Positions 149 to 55,433 of a stretch of 64,000 bases of DNA are shown in pieces. The notes beneath the pieces were generated by a model that made no database searches, was not told where the DNA came from, and was given only the letters and a program-made list of their open reading frames with translations. Position numbers and translations under genes: made by a program. Source of the stretch: Blastocladiella emersonii ATCC 22665 (lineage: Eukaryota; Fungi; Blastocladiomycota); NCBI GenBank assembly GCA_025594325.1, contig JANHCV010000001.1, positions 1,488,001 to 1,552,000 on the forward strand, in the 5' to 3' direction. Positions within the stretch are counted from its first letter, which is position 1. The number at the start of each line of letters is the position of its first letter.

Positions 149-2503
149 ATGCGGCCGAGCCAGACCCAGAACCCCGCGCAGCAGCAGCCGCCGCCCCTCA
201 TCATGTCGCTTCCGCCCGGTCAGCAGCTTCCCGCGGGCGCCGTCCTCGTTGCCGCGGCGGGTGGCGCCAACGAGGAGTCGACCGCGCTCCGCGAGGACCT
301 CTCCCGGACCAATTCGGAGCTTCTCGCGCGCACGGGCGAGATCGCCATGCTGCGCCAGAATCTCGCGCGGCTCGAGGCGCAGCGCACCCAGTCCGAGACC
401 GAGGCCAACCGTGCCGCTGCCCAGCTTCGCGAACAGCACGAGCGCGAGGTCGCCGACCTTCGCGCCGAAATGGAGCGCATGCGGTCCGAAATGGCCTTCC
501 ACGAACACAACTCGCGCCAGCAGGCGTGGCGTGCCAGCCGCGTCGTCTACTCGCAGCACCCGGCCCAGTCGCAAATGTCGCCGGTTGTGGGCAGCAGGGT
601 CCCGCAATCGCCGGCCCCCTTTTCGCAGTCTCACGCTCGTGGTGCGTGGCCTGGTGCGAGCGGCCTCGGTCGCCGTGATTTGCCGCCACCGGCTCCGCGC
701 TTGACGCAACTCGCAGCGTCACGTCCACCTGGATCCGATAGCCCCGTCCCCGCGCATCCTTCCGCATCGGCATCTTCGGCCATGGATGTGGATGTCGACT
801 CGATGCCGCCACCACCGCTTCCGCCGCCGCCCGCCCCGCTTCCCGCATCCAATGTCGCTGCTGTCGTTCCTGTCGCGCCCGAGCTTCTCGCACCTCCTTC
901 CCCAAGCACGACGGATCGCCCACCTTCGGCGGCCAGTGTCGCTGTGCAAGCCATCAACGAGTCGCTTCCGTCCGCGCCTACCGCTCCTCCAGAACCCATC
1001 CTGATTGCCCTTCGCGACGTTGCCGCTGCCTCGCCGTCCTGCATCTCCGCCAGCGTCCGCGACACCATGTTCATCCTCGCCGCTCGCGGCGACGCGGACG
1101 CGCTCTGCGCCACGTCCGTGTTCCTCAGTACGCTTCTCGGCGCCCAAGCTACCATCGGCTCGCCCACTCTTCCCAATCTTCTCGTCGGGACCGCGCGGGT
1201 CTTGCAGTGGCTCACGGACTCGCTGCGGGCGCGGGGTCTCCTCGCCGGCCTGCTTGACGCGATCCTCGACTACGCCGCGAGCGATCCGCGCCACATCATT
1301 AGTGTGCTTCACGAGGCCATTTGCGCGTGCGCGGCTCACGTCAACCGGCTCCATTACGGCGACGATCGCGCGGCCGCGACGAGTAGCCCGCCCAGCTTGA
1401 CCAAAGGGACCACAAGCACTGCTCCGTCACCGCCGCCACGCGACCGCCTCGAGCCGTGGTACCGCGCCGTGTGTCGCCTGTTTGCCGTCATCGAGTCGAT
1501 TGCCCGCGCCTCGCGCAAGCACCTGTCGCTCGTGGCGCGCGTCGCCGGCCCGTTCTGGCAGCGCAACGAGATCGAGTACCTCGCCAAGGACCGCGACTGG
1601 TCCGACGCCGTCCACGCTGCGCTCGCGCGCTGGATGGTGCTCCTGGTCCAGACGCCGCAGACGATCGCGTCGCTCGCGCACCGCCGGTCCCTCGTCCCGT
1701 TCCTCGGCAAGCTCCTGCGCGTCGACCCGCCGCGCGAGTCGCCCGCCATCGCGCCACCCGCGGACGTTGGTGGTTGCGAGCAGGCGGCCGACAACGCAGA
1801 GCGCGAGTTTGGGATTGCCGCGACGCACGTCGCCGTGCTCGAGGTGTACTCTTGTCTCGCCGCGCACTTTCCCGTGGCCGTGTCGTGGCACTGGATGGCC
1901 GTCGACGGGATCGCCGCGCGGATCGTCGCGGTCCTGCACGACACGGCGAGCCAGCTGCACTCGGCCCCACCAAGCCCCTGCTGCCGCCGCGTGACGCGGA
2001 TGCGGCTCCGCGTCGTGTCGCTCGCGATGCGCATCATCCACTCACTCGCCCTGCGCATGCAGCAGTCGACTATGGCGGACCCGGACGCGCGCCGCGCGGC
2101 GCTCGCGGCCCTCGATGCGCTCGCCAAGGCCGGCGGCGGGATCCCCAGCAACGAGGGGCTCGGGACGGGCGCGCCGACGGCCGCGGCGTTCCCGCTGCTC
2201 CTCGAGGACCTGCTGCGCCAACCGCTCGGCCTGCCCGAGCTCGCCAAGCACAAGCTCATGTCGTCGATTGCCATGGTCCACGCGCTGCCGGGTGCGCCGC
2301 CGTTGCCGAGTGCTTCTGCTGGAGCGGCGAGTTCGGTTGCAGAGCGGAGCGCCGCGCGGAGGCTTCGGCGATCGGATCCAGCAGGAGCGACCGAGGCCGT
2401 CGCGGTGGTCTGCACGCTGGCCAAGGAACTCGAGTCGATGCTCATTTCGACCAAGCACATCAAGGCGCCGATCCCGCCGGCCGATCCCGTAACGGCTTTG
2501 TGA
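149..2503 (+). CDS. ATRIP/Rad26/Ddc2-like ATR-interacting protein (probable)
   Basis: 784-aa ORF. The N-terminal coiled coil ELLARTGEIAMLRQNL...EVADLRAEMERMRSEMAFHE resembles the GEIxILR coiled coil of ATRIP/Rad26. It is followed by a Pro-rich linker and a helical Leu/Ala-rich C-terminal region. Family assignment is from recall. Confidence 0.55.
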   Translation: MRPSQTQNPAQQQPPPLIMSLPPGQQLPAGAVLVAAAGGANEESTALREDLSRTNSELLARTGEIAMLRQNLARLEAQRTQSETEANRAAAQLREQHEREVADLRAEMERMRSEMAFHEHNSRQQAWRASRVVYSQHPAQSQMSPVVGSRVPQSPAPFSQSHARGAWPGASGLGRRDLPPPAPRLTQLAASRPPGSDSPVPAHPSASASSAMDVDVDSMPPPPLPPPPAPLPASNVAAVVPVAPELLAPPSPSTTDRPPSAASVAVQAINESLPSAPTAPPEPILIALRDVAAASPSCISASVRDTMFILAARGDADALCATSVFLSTLLGAQATIGSPTLPNLLVGTARVLQWLTDSLRARGLLAGLLDAILDYAASDPRHIISVLHEAICACAAHVNRLHYGDDRAAATSSPPSLTKGTTSTAPSPPPRDRLEPWYRAVCRLFAVIESIARASRKHLSLVARVAGPFWQRNEIEYLAKDRDWSDAVHAALARWMVLLVQTPQTIASLAHRRSLVPFLGKLLRVDPPRESPAIAPPADVGGCEQAADNAEREFGIAATHVAVLEVYSCLAAHFPVAVSWHWMAVDGIAARIVAVLHDTASQLHSAPPSPCCRRVTRMRLRVVSLAMRIIHSLALRMQQSTMADPDARRAALAALDALAKAGGGIPSNEGLGTGAPTAAAFPLLLEDLLRQPLGLPELAKHKLMSSIAMVHALPGAPPLPSASAGAASSVAERSAARRLRRSDPAGATEAVAVVCTLAKELESMLISTKHIKAPIPPADPVTAL

Positions 2504-3240
2504 CGAACGTGACACTATCTGAATAGCAAACGTATTGATACAACTGTGATCCGTCGCGAGGCAAGTCAGTGTCGCGGTGGCGCAAGCCTCGACTGTCCTC
2601 GCCTTGTACCCGATCTCGCACCACTGACGAACGCGCGAAAGACTTGCTGACCGATACACACGTACTCACTGTGAATTTCGGGCGTCTGCGGAAATCCCGA
2701 TGAGTCTTGGGCGAGGACGAGGAACCTGCAAGCAAACAGAATCGTGCCGATGCGCCACGCACGTGCTCGTGAACGTCGCGTCTCGGCGACCTGTAGCCGG
2801 CTCGGATTCGCCACCAAGTGGGCACGCCGCAATGAAGTCTGATGTTTTCGTGTCCTTCGCAGCAAGGCGCTCACATGTCGTGCTTAAGCGTGGCCAACGG
2901 CATTGCCGCTACGACCCAACGCGTCAGCGACTGAGCTCGCCATGCCATAAGGTCCTCGTGCCACAACGGAGAGGCCATCGCGGACCTGCTGTACCATCAA
3001 GCCGACTCTCTGTACGCCATCGGCGGCTGGTAGACGAGCGATGGTACTGATGGCCACCATGATCGTCACAGCGACAAGAGTCCAATGCTGTAGATCGAGC
3101 CTGCGTTGATGACCAGAACAATTGCACGCCTCTTGGACAATCTGATGATGATGGCCAATAGATCTCGCTTTCGAGCGAGTACGTGAGGCTGGTCGCAGCC
3201 CCTGAACGTGAATTCAGCGAGTAAAGCTCGATTTCTGCGG

Positions 3241-4150
3241 GTGGGAGTGACCATGGCCATCCGACTTGGTGGTTGGCGGATCACCTCCGCCATCAACTCC
3301 TGTATCACCCAACCAAAAAAAATTCGCATCTAGAAGATGCTTTTACTCGAATGCTCATGACCTGAGAGTAAAATCACGGACTAAAACCGAATTTCGGGGG
3401 TGGGGGTGACCATGGCCATCCGACTTTGGGTCGGCCGCCCACCTCCACCATCAACTCCCGCGTCACACAACGCAAAAGAATTCACATCTAAGAGATGCTT
3501 CCACACATTATGGCGAAAGAAGCGAGAATTGGATAAATCTGAAGGTGGGAGTGACCGTGGCCGGCGACCTCCTTCGCGTCAGATCACCTCCACCATCGCC
3601 CCCAAGATCACCTAACTAAAAAAAAAATTCGCATCTTAAAGATGCTTCCACTCAAGAAAATATCTTCGGAGAGTGGAAGCAGTGAGTAAAACACGAATGC
3701 TGGGGATGGGGGTGACCATGACCACCGCCCGACCACCGACTTCCTGGCAGTCAATCGACTCCACCCTCAACTCCCGCGTTACTTAACAAAAAAATTCGCA
3801 TGTTAGAGATGCTTCCACTCACCATGACGGTCCTCCAGGAGCGAAAGAAGCAAGGCTGCGACGAATCCTGGGGGTGGGAGCGACCATGGCCATCGTCCGG
3901 CCACCGACTCCTCCGCCTCCGACCACGTCCACCATCAACACCGGTACCACTAACAAAAAAAAATGGCTTCTTAGAGATGCTTCCACTCAATCAAACAATC
4001 TCGGTGCGCGAAATCGGTGACTAAAACACGAAGCCTGGGGGTGGGGGTGACCGTGGCCAGCGACTAACCACCGACTCTCCCGCTTCCACCATCAACTCCC
4101 GTATCACACAACTCAAAAAAAATTCGCATCTTAGAGATGCTTCCACTCAA
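3241..4150. repeat. Degenerate tandem array of six ~145-168-bp units, each ending in the U6 3' module
   Basis: Units start with GTGGG(A/G)GTGACC-like sequence at 3241, 3400, 3545, 3706, 3874 and 4041. Most carry CCACCATCAACTCC-like sequence. Each has an A7-10 tract (interrupted in unit 2) and TTCGCATC-N5-GATGCTTCCACTC-like sequence, followed by a ~30-40-nt more variable segment. Confidence 0.95.
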
Positions 4151-4181
4151 GAGACAGTGTGTCATCCTTAACGCAGGGACC

Positions 4182-4212
<31 letters not shown>

Positions 4213-4228
4213 GAATGTGCCCTAAGGC
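4115..4228 (-). ncRNA. U6: U6 spliceosomal snRNA (5' end approximate)
   Basis: Minus strand reads GCCTTAGGGCACATTCAAAATTGGAACGATACAGAGAAGATTAGCATGGTCCCTGCGTTAAGGATGACACACTGTCTCTTGAGTGGAAGCATCTCTAAGATGCGAATTTTTTTT. It has a 5' stem-loop, ACAGAGA box, AGC triad, ISL and a T8 Pol III terminator. Confidence 0.93.
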
Positions 4229-5265
4229 GAAGTGTGCGTCGAAAACCGCGTATTTGATGGTTCAGCCGAGTTACACAAGCAACGGTTGTGGGTCCCGGCT
4301 TAGTCTTCTCTGGCGGTGTTTCACACTCTTTGACGGCCCGGCACCGTGGTCTCGGAGGCTGCCGTCAGGGGCCACTTGCACTCCACGTCCGTCGTCCTCC
4401 TGACCTCAGTCCCATAGATGGCCATGAAGCTCGACAGTTGATGCAACCTTTCGGTGCCTGGGACGCTCGCCCACCTTCTGCATGACCGTGCACCGTGTGA
4501 CCATCCCCCGAATCCTTCGCCAGCGACGCCCGCCCGTCGGTCCTCGTTGCCACCATACAAGGGCCCGTCGACAACCGGTCCTTCTATCATACTACATGAA
4601 ACAACTGCTCTCGATGCTGTCCTTGGGAAACCAGGTCGACGTGAGTCGGGGCAGCGGCCCGGGCGAAGTCTCCTGACGGGACCCCCTCGTCCGCCGCTCG
4701 TCTCGCTTCGGCCATGATCCTTCTCTACCCGCAAACTCTCGATGGTATTTGTGCTCTGACAGAGGACTTGGACATCTCCATGCCTCGTTCGGTCCTCCCG
4801 AGTCCGCATCTGCCTTCCGATCAGGCTCGTCGACGCTGCTCCTCGCTGCCCGCTCTTCGGGTCAGGCCCTTCGTGTCATGTTCTCGCCACGGCCGTCGTC
4901 GGCACTGCATCCTGACGTTCTCGCAGCTTGCTCCTACAAGCGGCCCTCTCGGCGTTTGAGCAGCATGCCTAGTCCCTCCTGATGCGACCGCGTACTTCGA
5001 CCGCCGCAAGTCCGCTCGATCCGACCTGATCCGAATATGCGAGACCCGCCATTCTCCATCATACTTGCCAGCCGAGCAACATTCTGGTGGCTATCTGCAA
5101 CACTCGAGCCGCGGTATCGCGCAAGGCTCGTCCAAGTGGACTCCCTCCCACCTTGCTCGCGCGGCGATCTCGTAGCGGCCTCACACCGCTTGTCCTTCAC
5201 AAACCCCTCACTCCTCATCTCACTAGTCCAGCAGCGACTACATCTTACAGCTTACATTCCCGCTT

Positions 5266-9917: not shown

Positions 9918-10057
9918 TATCGTCTCCCTCTCTCTCTATATTTACCTTGCCTTTCGTCCCTCCCTCCCCCGTTCCCGCCTCATACTCCGACTACTCAAAG
10001 AGATAGTGATTCATTTCAATTGCATGCAGCCCTACTCCTTCGCTGGCACTGACGGTA

Positions 10058-13000
10058 CTACCACCACGGACTCCCCGCGGCCGCCGCCGCCGCCACGCGG
10101 TCGCGCACCGTCGGACTCGCGTCGCCCGCGAGCGCGTCGCGCGCCGTCGCCAGCGCGCGCACCAGCGGGCCCGCCACGTCGGCTGACAGCTTGACCGCCG
10201 TCGCAGTAGTAACCGGGGATTCGTGCACGGCTGGTCTCGGCGCTGCTGGTGTTGGTTTCGCCGCGGCAGCAGCCGTGTTGCTGAGACTCCGCGGCCGCGG
10301 GATCGACGCGACGACGGGCGACGTGACCGTCGAGCTGGGCCTGGACACGAACGCGATCCCGCCGTCGTCCTCATCCTCGTCCTCCTCCTCGCTATCCGAG
10401 TACGGCGGCGGAAGCGGCGGCATCGCGGGCGCGCCGACAGGCGTCGCCGCAGCGAGCGCGTGGATGACGGTCGCGCCGTTGAACGCGGCGGCGATCTGCA
10501 TGCGGACGTCGAGCACGGTGTCGCGCGCGAGCGCGACGGCCAGCGACGCGAGGTCGTTGGCGAGCGCCAGCGGCGCCGTGGCGTCGCGCCGCAGCGCCGC
10601 GTGCACGCCCGCGTCGGACCCCGTGGCCGCGGCTGCCGCGACGGGGAGAAGGTGCGCGACGGCGGCGGCGGCGGCCATGCGGTCGTGGAAGTGTGTCGAC
10701 TCGGCGAGATGGACGAGGCGCGCGGCCACGTCCGCGAGGAGAGGCGCGGGGAGCTGCGCCGTGACGAACGGCAGGCGTTCGGCGGCTTTCGCGCGGACGG
10801 CTGTCACGGGGTCGGCGAGCAGAGCGAACAGCGACGGGGTGAGCGCGGTCCAGGCCGCGTGCACCGGGTCCACGATCTCTTCATCCGCCTCCACCTCCGC
10901 GAGGACGTGGTCGGGCATCGACGCGGCGGCCGGCGACGAGACCGCGGCGGGCGCCTCGGCGGCCGTCGGGGGCAGGATCGAGCCGTTGACCTCGCCGTCC
11001 TCGAGTCCGGCGACGGGCGACGTCGGCGCGCTCGTGCTCTTGGTGGTACGGGCGCGCGCCACGACGCCGGGCCGCAGGTACAGCTCGAACCACGACGGCA
11101 GCGCGCGCGCCAGGACGAACCGCAGGTGCCAGTTCGGGTGCGCGGCGAGCAGCGCGGGCGCACGGAGCAGCTCGAGCGGCATGTCCGCCGGGTCGAGCTG
11201 CGCGAGGATCCCGGGCACCTTGGCGTACAGGACGGCCTTGGTCTATACCGATGAAAATGTCAGCAACGGCTCTTGGACCACATCGCGAGAAAGCGTACCT
11301 GGTCGTCCTCACGCTCGAGCCAATCGACGAGCACCGGCACGAGATCCCCCGCGACCGCGGACCGCGGAACCACACGCGCGAGTACGTCAATGGCCGCAAT
11401 CAGCGGCCGGCGGACGTCCATGAGCGGGTCGCGCGCGAGGTGGACAAACACCTGGCGGAACCGCGCGTGCCACCACGCCGTCGGGAGCACCGCCGCCATG
11501 CCGGGCAGCGTGAACGCGGACCGCGCCATGCGGTCCGGGTCCTTCCACTTCATGTCGGCGAGGCAGTACCGGTCGAGAAACTGGTCGGGCACGCGGTCCG
11601 GGAACGCGGCGCGTCGCGGGAGTGCGGCGAGCGGCGGGCCCGGGCTCAGCGCGTCCGGGTCGCCCGCGTCCAGCGCTAGGTCCATGGCGAGCGGCGGGCG
11701 CGCCGCGTCGGCCGCGGACTCGGCGGCGTGCTCGGCCGACGTCGCGGGGCGGAGCGAGTTGAGGATCTCGCCGCTGGCCGCGGTCGCGGGGGCAGCAGCG
11801 TCATCCTCCTCGGCGGGCGAGTCGGACGCGAACGCGAGGATACACCGTGCGAGCCCGCCCTGCATCGCGTCGCGGACGTTCTTGCTCGGGTCACCCAGAA
11901 GACCCGACACGATCTCGGCACCGGGCCCCTGGCGGAGCCGCCACGGCATCGCCTCGATGACGGCGGGCACCGACTCGGCCGCGCGGCGCCGCGTCACGTA
12001 CACCTTGTCGGCCGCAACTGTACGAAGAAGCGGGACGACGGCCGCCTCGATGACAGCGGGGGCGACGGGGACACACGCCGCGACGGCCGCCGCCGCGCCG
12101 GCGCGCACCGCGTTGCTCGCGTGCGCGGCAAAGTTGCGCGCGAGGAGCACCGTGAGCCGCTCGCGCTCGCGCGGGGAGAGGCCGCGCGCGACAACGGGTT
12201 CGGCGAGCAGCTCGAGCACGGCTGCGTGCACGTCCTCGAGCCGCTTGGCGGGCGACGGCGGTGCGGTCGGAGTCACGGCGCCGCCGCCGCCGACGTGGCT
12301 GAGCGAGTCGAGCTGGCCGAGACTGCCCGAGAAGCCGAACCCGCCGGACCCGAACCCGCTGCCGCCGAGAACGAGACCCGACCCGCCCGCGCCGCCCGAC
12401 GCGGGCTGCTCGTGTACCGCGCCGAGCTGCGTCAGGTAGAAGAGCAGGCTGCGCAGGTGCGGGTCGCTCGCGGTGCCGTAGCTCGGCGTCGTCGTCGCGT
12501 CGCTGGCCGTAGCGGCGGTCGTGGCGGAAATGGGGGTATCGGGAACGACAGCGGCCGCGGGATCCTCGTCGGACGACGACGCGTAGCCCGATGGCACGGG
12601 GACAGGGACCGCGCCGGCGATCGCGAACAGCGTCGCGGCATCGGGCGGGGTGCCCGCGGCGACGCTCGCGGCGAGCGTGGGCGAATTGAGCGCGGCGAGC
12701 CCGTTCGCGGGCGTGGCGGTGGTCGCGGCGCTCGCACCCGAAGCTGCGGCCGCAGCAGCCGCCGCCGCCGCCGCTGCGGCGGGATGTGGTGGCAGCGACG
12801 GCGTGAGCGACGTGAACCCGGCGGTGGTACTCGCGGTCTCCTCGGCGGCCGCCGCCGTGGGCGTCGCGGGGGACGCGATCCCGGCCGCGGGATCCGCGGC
12901 GCGCTGCTTGTAGTTCTGGGTGTGGTCAATGAACCGCTGGTGCTTGGGCTGCATGCGCGGTGACATGGGTTTGGCGCCGAGGTGGGTCAGGCTGCCGTTG

Positions 13001-48288: not shown

Positions 48289-49100
48289 TCACGTACACGG
48301 GTGCGAGTTCGGGCAGGTCGCCGGGAGCCAGTTGCTTAGATCAGCCACTTTGAGCTGCGCTGGCAGCGATGAGAACACGAGCGCGAGGTCCTCCCCGGAA
48401 GCGTGACACGTACGCTTGACGGCGAGAAGCAACCCCATCGAACCATTCCGTTGGACGACAATGTGACTGGCTGATGAGAGAGATCGAGCTTGGCAAGGCC
48501 GCGCGGCAGACTCCGAACAAGAGCGAGGATGGAGTAACACCGAGTAAATAGAGCGAGGGACAAGACCAAGTCAGCGTCAGGGGAGGCCCCGTCAAGGCCA
48601 CGAGCTCGAGTCGAACATAGAGTAGCAACGCATGCGATCGAAATCGCGAGCAAGGCATCTTTTCAGAATTAGGAAAGGTTATCAGCATGTGTAAAAAAAT
48701 TGTGTTACTAAGTGTGAGCTGAATTGTTTCTTCATCACGAAAGATGATTGGGCAGGCGACGCGAGGAGCGCGCGCGCAGCTGTCGGACGTATAACTAATA
48801 GCAAGGCAAGATGCCGTCCCGATGGACGAGCGGGGCGAGGAACGTGGCTGAGCACGACGGTTCAGGCTCTTGGCGGGGTGGTTCGGCCACAGCGAACAGA
48901 GACGGGTTGCGTCGAGACAGTGCTTGTGGAGATCGTTGCTCGTGGAGATCGTTCCGTGGCTACATGATTTGGACTGGTTCATAGATCGCTGTATTCCCAC
49001 CGAGGCATCCGATTCGACTTTATGCCGTGGGGTGGTTTTGCGTCCTGTGTCGGCTGAGATCAGCTGACTGGTTGCTTTGCCAGTTGCTTTCACGGTGGTG
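48289..49100 (-). pseudogene. Decayed LRR gene relic (boundaries approximate)
   Basis: Short frame-broken ORFs with ALVRSLPRGLAKLDLSH and LVFSSLPAQLKVADLSN resemble the repeats of the 20615-22394 gene. Located in a lower-GC island. Confidence 0.5.
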
Positions 49101-55043: not shown

Positions 55044-55433
55044 TTGAGGAGGGGGTCGGGTGGGTGATTGCGTGATATGTGATATAGACTAGCACTTGCT
55101 TTGCTTACATCATTGACTGATGCTCCTTTGGGGCGAGGACTTTCACTCGCGTCGCACACTACACGTGAGTGGCTCAACTTCGCGTTGCGCCACTCCAGCC
55201 CGCGGCTCGACTTTCGCAGCATCGCGCTTTCAATGAATCTCGCAGGAAGCTTATACGTGGTTCCGTGTCGTCGCTGTGAAGCATACAAAGATCAAAGTGG
55301 TTCCGCGTCAGCGTCCGCGTGTGGCACTCGTTCCTCAAGGCGGCTCAGATGCGACCAAGAGTGGCAGGCGACGGACTAGAATACGTGGTATACACTTTCA
55401 AACAAAAAAAGTTCTCGTTGCGCATCGGCAAGC

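Follow-up and report, generated by a model that had tools for sequence, protein, structure and literature searches.

A tandem array of the U6 snRNA 3′ end, terminator and downstream flank beside the U6 gene of Blastocladiella emersonii

The U6 gene of the water fungus Blastocladiella emersonii ATCC 22665 is followed by a series of copies of its own 3′ end, each of which carries with it a terminator and the DNA that lies beyond the terminator. A repeat search of the window (the whole 64-kb stretch of contig JANHCV010000001.1 that we analysed) identified six in-register copies of the U6 tail together with a T-run, namely the one that belongs to the gene itself and five extra copies. The extra units lack the body of U6 and its promoter and so are not U6 genes, and most likely they are not independent genes at all. 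We lean, on balance, towards reading the array as a promoter-less tandem duplication of the U6 3′ end and its flank that would have kept terminator-competent modules.

Judged by its match to Rfam family RF00026 (minus strand, 4131–4228; 72.4 bits against a gathering score of 44; model positions 1–105), the locus is a genuine U6 spliceosomal RNA gene of B. emersonii. The RNA is about 114 nt in length when its extended 3′ tail is included, and ends in a 6-bp terminal hairpin (4126–4140) that is followed by T8 at 4115–4122. Only the gene reaches the RF00026 threshold for a full-length U6; none of the extra units does. The array begins inside U6 near position 4150 and ends at about 3190 in the head/loop part of a unit, with no further tail, thereby occupying the DNA that separates U6 from the 3′ end (3079) of a convergent ATRIP-like gene (Table 1). 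On the other side, the interval of ~1.6 kb that runs from the promoter side of U6 to the 3′ end of a P450 gene (4229–5841) is without a called gene in the public annotation.

Table 1 Features of the U6 locus and its array (positions are those of the window).
Feature	Position	Strand	Details
ATRIP-like gene	149–3079	+	Public annotation; converges on array
Unit u5, last	3190–3352	-	Tail 3323–3349 (GG to AA); T8 3315–3322; block 2 3285–3300; block 3 3235–3259
Hairpin R5, second head-loop-tail hairpin	3315–3396	-	Ends at T8
Unit u4	3353–3510	-	Tail 3481–3507; interrupted T-run 3472–3480; block 2 3443–3458; block 3 3394–3418; head 3365–3393
Unit u3, B-type head	3511–3657	-	Tail 3628–3654 (hairpin intact); T10 3618–3627; block 2 3588–3603; block 3 3539–3563; head 3511–3538
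Hairpin R3, strongest head-loop-tail hairpin	3618–3702	-	11-bp perfect inner stem and 12-bp outer stem; ends at T10
Unit u2	3658–3824	-	Tail 3795–3821; T7 3788–3794; block 2 3759–3774; block 3 3700–3724; head 3670–3699
Unit u1, B-type head	3825–3992	-	Tail 3963–3989 (hairpin broken); T9 3955–3963; block 2 3927–3942; block 3 3868–3892; head 3838–3867
Unit u0 (U6's own tail)	3993–4152	-	Tail 4123–4149; T8; block 2 4084–4099; block 3 4035–4059; head 4005–4034
U6 gene with extended hairpin-ended 3′ tail and T8 terminator	4115–4228	-	Rfam RF00026; sequence reading
P450 gene	5842–7730	-	Public annotation

Each unit is made up of the last ~27 nt of U6, a T-run terminator and ~125 bp of flank, and these last ~27 nt with the T-run are the only U6 sequence that the gene and the extra units have in common. 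In plus-strand coordinates the copies of the tail and T-run start at 3315, 3473, 3620, 3787, 3955 and 4115, which places successive copies 158, 147, 167, 168 and 160 bp apart. A 26-nt tail pattern searched with up to 3 mismatches gave 5 matches, compared with 0 in 100 shuffles, and a 24-nt flank motif searched at the same tolerance likewise gave 5 matches against 0 in shuffles. The initial annotation of this DNA, which had described the U6 tail and its flank as recurring five more times, is therefore borne out. Alignment of the six units indicated that it is the whole ~160-bp unit that is repeated head-to-tail, the DNA past the terminator included, with pairwise identities of 63–78%. With its six copies, its period of 147–168 bp and the untranscribed flank as part of the repeat, the array is a tandem DNA repeat of the minisatellite-like kind. 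Tandem Repeats Finder did not detect the array, because its units are no more alike than the above identities. A protein-coding repeat was considered and rejected, since the unit lengths do not run in multiples of three and the units contain only short, unrelated ORFs.

The array arose by tandem duplication at the level of DNA and not by retroposition. Retropseudogenes copy only the RNA, without the downstream flank; here ~125 bp beyond the terminator were copied along with each tail, indicating that the copies were made from DNA rather than from U6 RNA, and the co-duplication of this flank in all six units led us to reject a retroposed snRNA pseudogene. Neighbour-joining analysis grouped u4 with u5 (bootstrap 97%), u0 with u2 (78%) and u1 with u3 (71%), a pattern that fits stepwise unequal exchange and from which it follows that the array grew by the copying of a two-unit block together with a separate duplication at the far end. 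The shortest branch is that of u0, the unit attached to U6 (0.09 versus 0.15–0.18), as expected if u0 alone is tied to a working gene. Towards the far end the tails decay, with branches of 0.13–0.15 for u4 and u5 and loss of the T-run in u4. Multiplication of snRNA sequence, either locally or dispersed through a genome, is also seen in tandem snRNA clusters such as those of insect U6 genes (PMC1761439) and in the truncated or retroposed U6 pseudogenes of mammals. Unlike snRNA clusters, however, which consist of whole genes with their promoters, the array described here multiplies only the last ~27 nt, the terminator and the untranscribed flank. The literature we searched contains no described U6 locus with such a layout, in agreement with what had been stated at the outset.

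Change is distributed unevenly along the unit. Expressed as Fitch changes per gap-free column, it amounts to 0.41 in the tail and T-run, 0.50 in block 2 (GGAGTTGATGGTGGAG) and 0.52 in block 3 (GGCCATGGTCACCCCCACCCCCAG), compared with 1.64 in link 1, 1.36 in link 2 and 1.26 in the head. Blocks 2 and 3 are thus about as conserved as the tail, changing ~3-fold less than the linkers, and the earlier description of the intervening sequence as diverged applies to the linkers but not to these two blocks. Evenly spread divergence, the pattern singled out beforehand as speaking for a neutrally decayed duplication, was not what we observed: change is clustered both in a tree-aware count (P = 0.016) and in a star count of the extras (P < 0.001), and among the extra units alone 10% of cells differ within the blocks versus 27% outside them. 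This clustering indicates that something has kept the three blocks alike, the candidates being constraint and patchy homogenisation. Block 2 is in part complementary to block 3, and the hairpin that the two could form is no stabler than shuffles in five of the six units (z +1.1 to −1.1), that of u3 alone reaching z −2.7.

The T-runs are among the parts that have been kept. Uninterrupted runs are present in four of the five extra units (T9 in u1, T7 in u2, T10 in u3 and T8 in u5), just as had been reported for runs of 7–10 nt, and the run of u4 is interrupted (TTCTTTT). Going by their sequence, these four would be competent Pol III terminators, having five or more uninterrupted T residues on the transcribed strand. 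Runs of T7 or longer occur seven times on the two strands of the window, and five of the seven lie in the array. By our own estimate, which takes a per-branch flank divergence of 16–20%, only about one T-run in six would be expected to have survived by chance. The terminal hairpin (GCATC-N5-GATGC) is intact in U6, u3 and u5; u2 and u4 keep a weakened form and u1 a broken one, so that the initial description of it as largely kept holds for two of the five extra units. A role for the extra units as fail-safe terminators, which had also been proposed, is possible; such a role, and with it any terminator activity of the extra units, would probably be incidental, however, because the T8 of U6 is already a strong terminator, one that from established Pol III knowledge we take to be efficient by itself.

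The 45–50 nt that precede each tail are homologous between units and belong to the repeat, and in u0, u2 and u4 this head is a reverse-complement copy, 72–78% identical, of the tail that follows. These findings run counter to the view that the segment before the tail is an unrelated variable head that is not U6, and equally to the suggestion that it might be a guide-like variable region. Head, loop and tail together form a hairpin, with the T-run at its end. The strongest of these hairpins, R3, has a predicted folding energy of −30 kcal/mol (z = −6.2; 0 of 200 shuffles; duplex test 0 of 500) and the second, R5, one of −21 kcal/mol (z = −3.0; duplex test 0 of 500); the folds of R2 and R4 are no better than those of shuffles, that of R1 is marginal, and in the u1 and u3 heads half of the pairing is gone. 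With the structure held fixed, 76% of cells are paired, compared with 31–51% when the partners are slid, which indicates that the inverted repeat is real. Covariation across the five sequences came to only 2 compensated pairs, a number matched in 140 of 500 shuffles. The paired changes comprise G-C to A-U in R4 and, in R5, GG to AA in the tail together with CC to TT in the head, and the closing stem of the head-loop-tail hairpin has been re-registered. Such paired changes could reflect selection or, alternatively, a switch of template from one arm of the inverted repeat to the other, which is a documented neutral source of them (PMC8794818). Hairpins produced by template switching (PMC8794818; PMC10710096) share with those described here a diverged inverted repeat and clustered changes that restore complementarity (as in R5, and in the perfect 11-bp stem of R3), and by analogy the inverted repeat may have originated by template switching; what sets the present case apart is that the copied sequence is an snRNA 3′ end and that the inverted repeat was then tandemly amplified. 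The minus-strand folds are mostly more stable than the plus-strand folds, and wobble pairs number 9 on the minus strand versus 3 on the plus strand, a difference that is not significant (p about 0.07 by our own binomial estimate). An H/ACA-like two-hairpin RNA was rejected as a candidate, neither an H box nor an ACA box being visible in the sequence.

Were the array a promoter-less duplication, as we favour, it would have originated locally, when DNA at the 3′ end of a functional U6 gene underwent tandem amplification between two breakpoints, one inside U6 at ~4150, roughly 78 nt into the RNA, and the other ~160 bp beyond it in the 3′ flank. The flank would already have held a diverged inverted copy of the tail before the amplification took place, after which a two-unit block would have been duplicated (u0u1 giving rise to u2u3), with u4 and u5 coming from a separate duplication. 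The hairpin and T7–10 modules of the extra units would stop Pol III that reads through U6. The better-kept blocks are probably either cis elements that derive from the U6 3′ flank or the product of homogenisation, both among the repeats and from arm to arm of the inverted repeat. Uneven divergence, the retained T-runs, the R3 and R5 folds and the strand bias, taken together, suggest some constraint beyond pure decay. If the array is a duplication scar, it provides a natural case in which the 3′ end of a busy Pol III gene is a hotspot of duplication, both inverted and tandem, and in which hairpin and terminator modules, the raw material of new small RNA genes, arise without selection.

The same blockwise conservation raises the possibility, which we consider real but rather unlikely, that the array is a selected, cis-acting one in which the poly-T runs and blocks 2 and 3 work at the level of DNA or chromatin. 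The units might then serve as redundant Pol III terminators, as a boundary of phased nucleosomes, or as factor sites like the downstream box B of SNR6 or "extra TFIIIC" sites. That the blocks are better kept even when the extras are compared only with each other (10% versus 27%), that the T-runs are retained, and that the array is located between U6 and the end of the convergent ATRIP-like gene are all consistent with a cis-acting array. Against it, the T8 of U6 should, on established Pol III knowledge, suffice for termination, and the units share no recurring B-box consensus, so that any factor site would be of an unfamiliar kind. There is a precedent in yeast, where the promoter of SNR6, the U6 gene, includes an essential element located past the terminator and linked to box A by a positioned nucleosome (PMC9136082). 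As in SNR6, the DNA of interest in B. emersonii reaches past the T-run, here for ~125 bp with conserved blocks, and it is the gene-adjacent unit that evolves most slowly (PMC9136082). SNR6 has one downstream element, whereas the B. emersonii locus has five reiterations that include the RNA 3′ end and terminator and that lack a B-box consensus; if blocks 2 and 3 play a downstream role of the SNR6 type, then they would do so with a different sequence. A period of ~160 bp with one nucleosome-excluding T-run per unit would fit the phased-nucleosome option. The unit period of 147–168 bp is near the fungal nucleosome repeat length and each unit has one poly(dA:dT) tract, phasing itself being put forward as an idea only. 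Should the blocks prove functional, they would amount to downstream control elements of U6 in an early-diverging fungus, and the locus would offer a natural array for studies of Pol III termination, recycling or boundary function.

It is unlikely, in our estimation, that the units are short Pol III genes in their own right, each giving a 45–90-nt RNA that would end in the U6 tail and oligo-U and be paired, in part or throughout, with an anti-tail segment of its own. An RNA of this sort might act as a competitor for La or Lsm2-8, as a mimic of the U2/U6 helix II partner (in helix II it is the U6 3′ tail that U2 pairs with) or as a precursor of hairpin-derived small RNAs. Several of the features set out above are in keeping with such genes: the tail and T-run are the best-kept part of the unit, the R3 and R5 hairpins end exactly at a T-run (z −6.2 and −3.0), two compensated pairs and a re-registered closing stem are present, the minus-strand folds are the stronger ones, and the position of blocks 2 and 3, upstream of the hairpin, is one that an external promoter could occupy. 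On the other hand, the u1 and u3 heads are half unpaired, R2 and R4 fold at the level of shuffles, and covariation does not rise above that level either. Nor did a search for promoter sequences identify any that the units share. When the 172 nt upstream of U6 were locally aligned with each unit, the scores lay at the shuffle mean, which amounts to no similarity to the U6 promoter. A scan for box A (TRGCNNAGTGG) and box B (GGTTCGANNCC) yielded isolated matches with 2 mismatches, none of which recurs across units; a TTTTAG/TTTTAC element is confined to the A-type units, and no TATA-like element is conserved across A- and B-type units. Rfam searches at E ≤ 10 gave no credible match to U6 or to any other family within the array (2900–4114) and no second U6 match in 2900–4700, and ARAGORN found no tRNA in the window. 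The proposal made from the sequence, of short Pol III RNAs that join a variable head to a U6-like tail, found no positive support, the units being without a promoter copy, a convincing A or B box, or an Rfam match.

Viral Pol III microRNA clusters offer a comparison for a series of hairpins each with a T-run, since they consist of ~70–85-nt hairpins of this kind at a spacing of 100–170 bp. The viral units, however, carry internal A and B boxes, which were not found here, and give rise to demonstrated transcripts. We regard as quite doubtful the more specific proposal that the five units form an expressed family of Pol III RNAs in which the U6 3′ tail and oligo-U are folded on an anti-tail and which would act as U6-tail decoys, competing for La/Lsm2-8 or for the U2 5′ end. 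If the units are expressed, they would represent a new class of U6-tail-bearing RNAs, and, if such a family exists, inverted duplication followed by tandem duplication would have turned the 3′ end of an snRNA into new small RNA genes.

That the repeat was mis-assembled or expanded artificially is highly improbable, for the units differ by 22–37% and by indels, which is incompatible with collapse or stutter of a single copy, the assembly (GCA_025594325.1; 21 contigs, 34.27 Mb) was made from PacBio HiFi reads with a mean length of 10.5 kb (SRR19593111; PMC9730499), and contigs from three DNA runs, all from one sample, contain 32–99% of the sampled words (0.99 and 0.96 in two of the runs).

Scans of metagenomes returned nothing beyond two chance matches, which lie in bacterial-looking coding sequence and have no U6 context. 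In B. britannica the neighbours of the ATRIP-like orthologue differ, and that locus is not syntenic with the window. Within the B. emersonii assembly, contig JANHCV010000011.1 encodes an annotated protein of 459 aa (10001–11461 of the fetched locus) that is 86% identical over 61% of the ATRIP-like ORF and that is, by this measure, a partial paralogous copy of it; comparison of the region around the paralogue showed no U6 array nearby. Outside the array, minus-strand T7 runs occur in the window only at 48693 and at 55404–55410. The run at 55404–55410 falls just past the TAG stop of a minus-strand ORF and is an ordinary 3′ UTR feature. The other T7 lies within a segment of ~85 nt (48665–48745, minus strand) that Rfam did not report at the gathering score and that is a candidate box C/D snoRNA, with a C-box-like GTGATGA, an internal CTGA, the T7 and a terminal, D-box-like TTCTGA.
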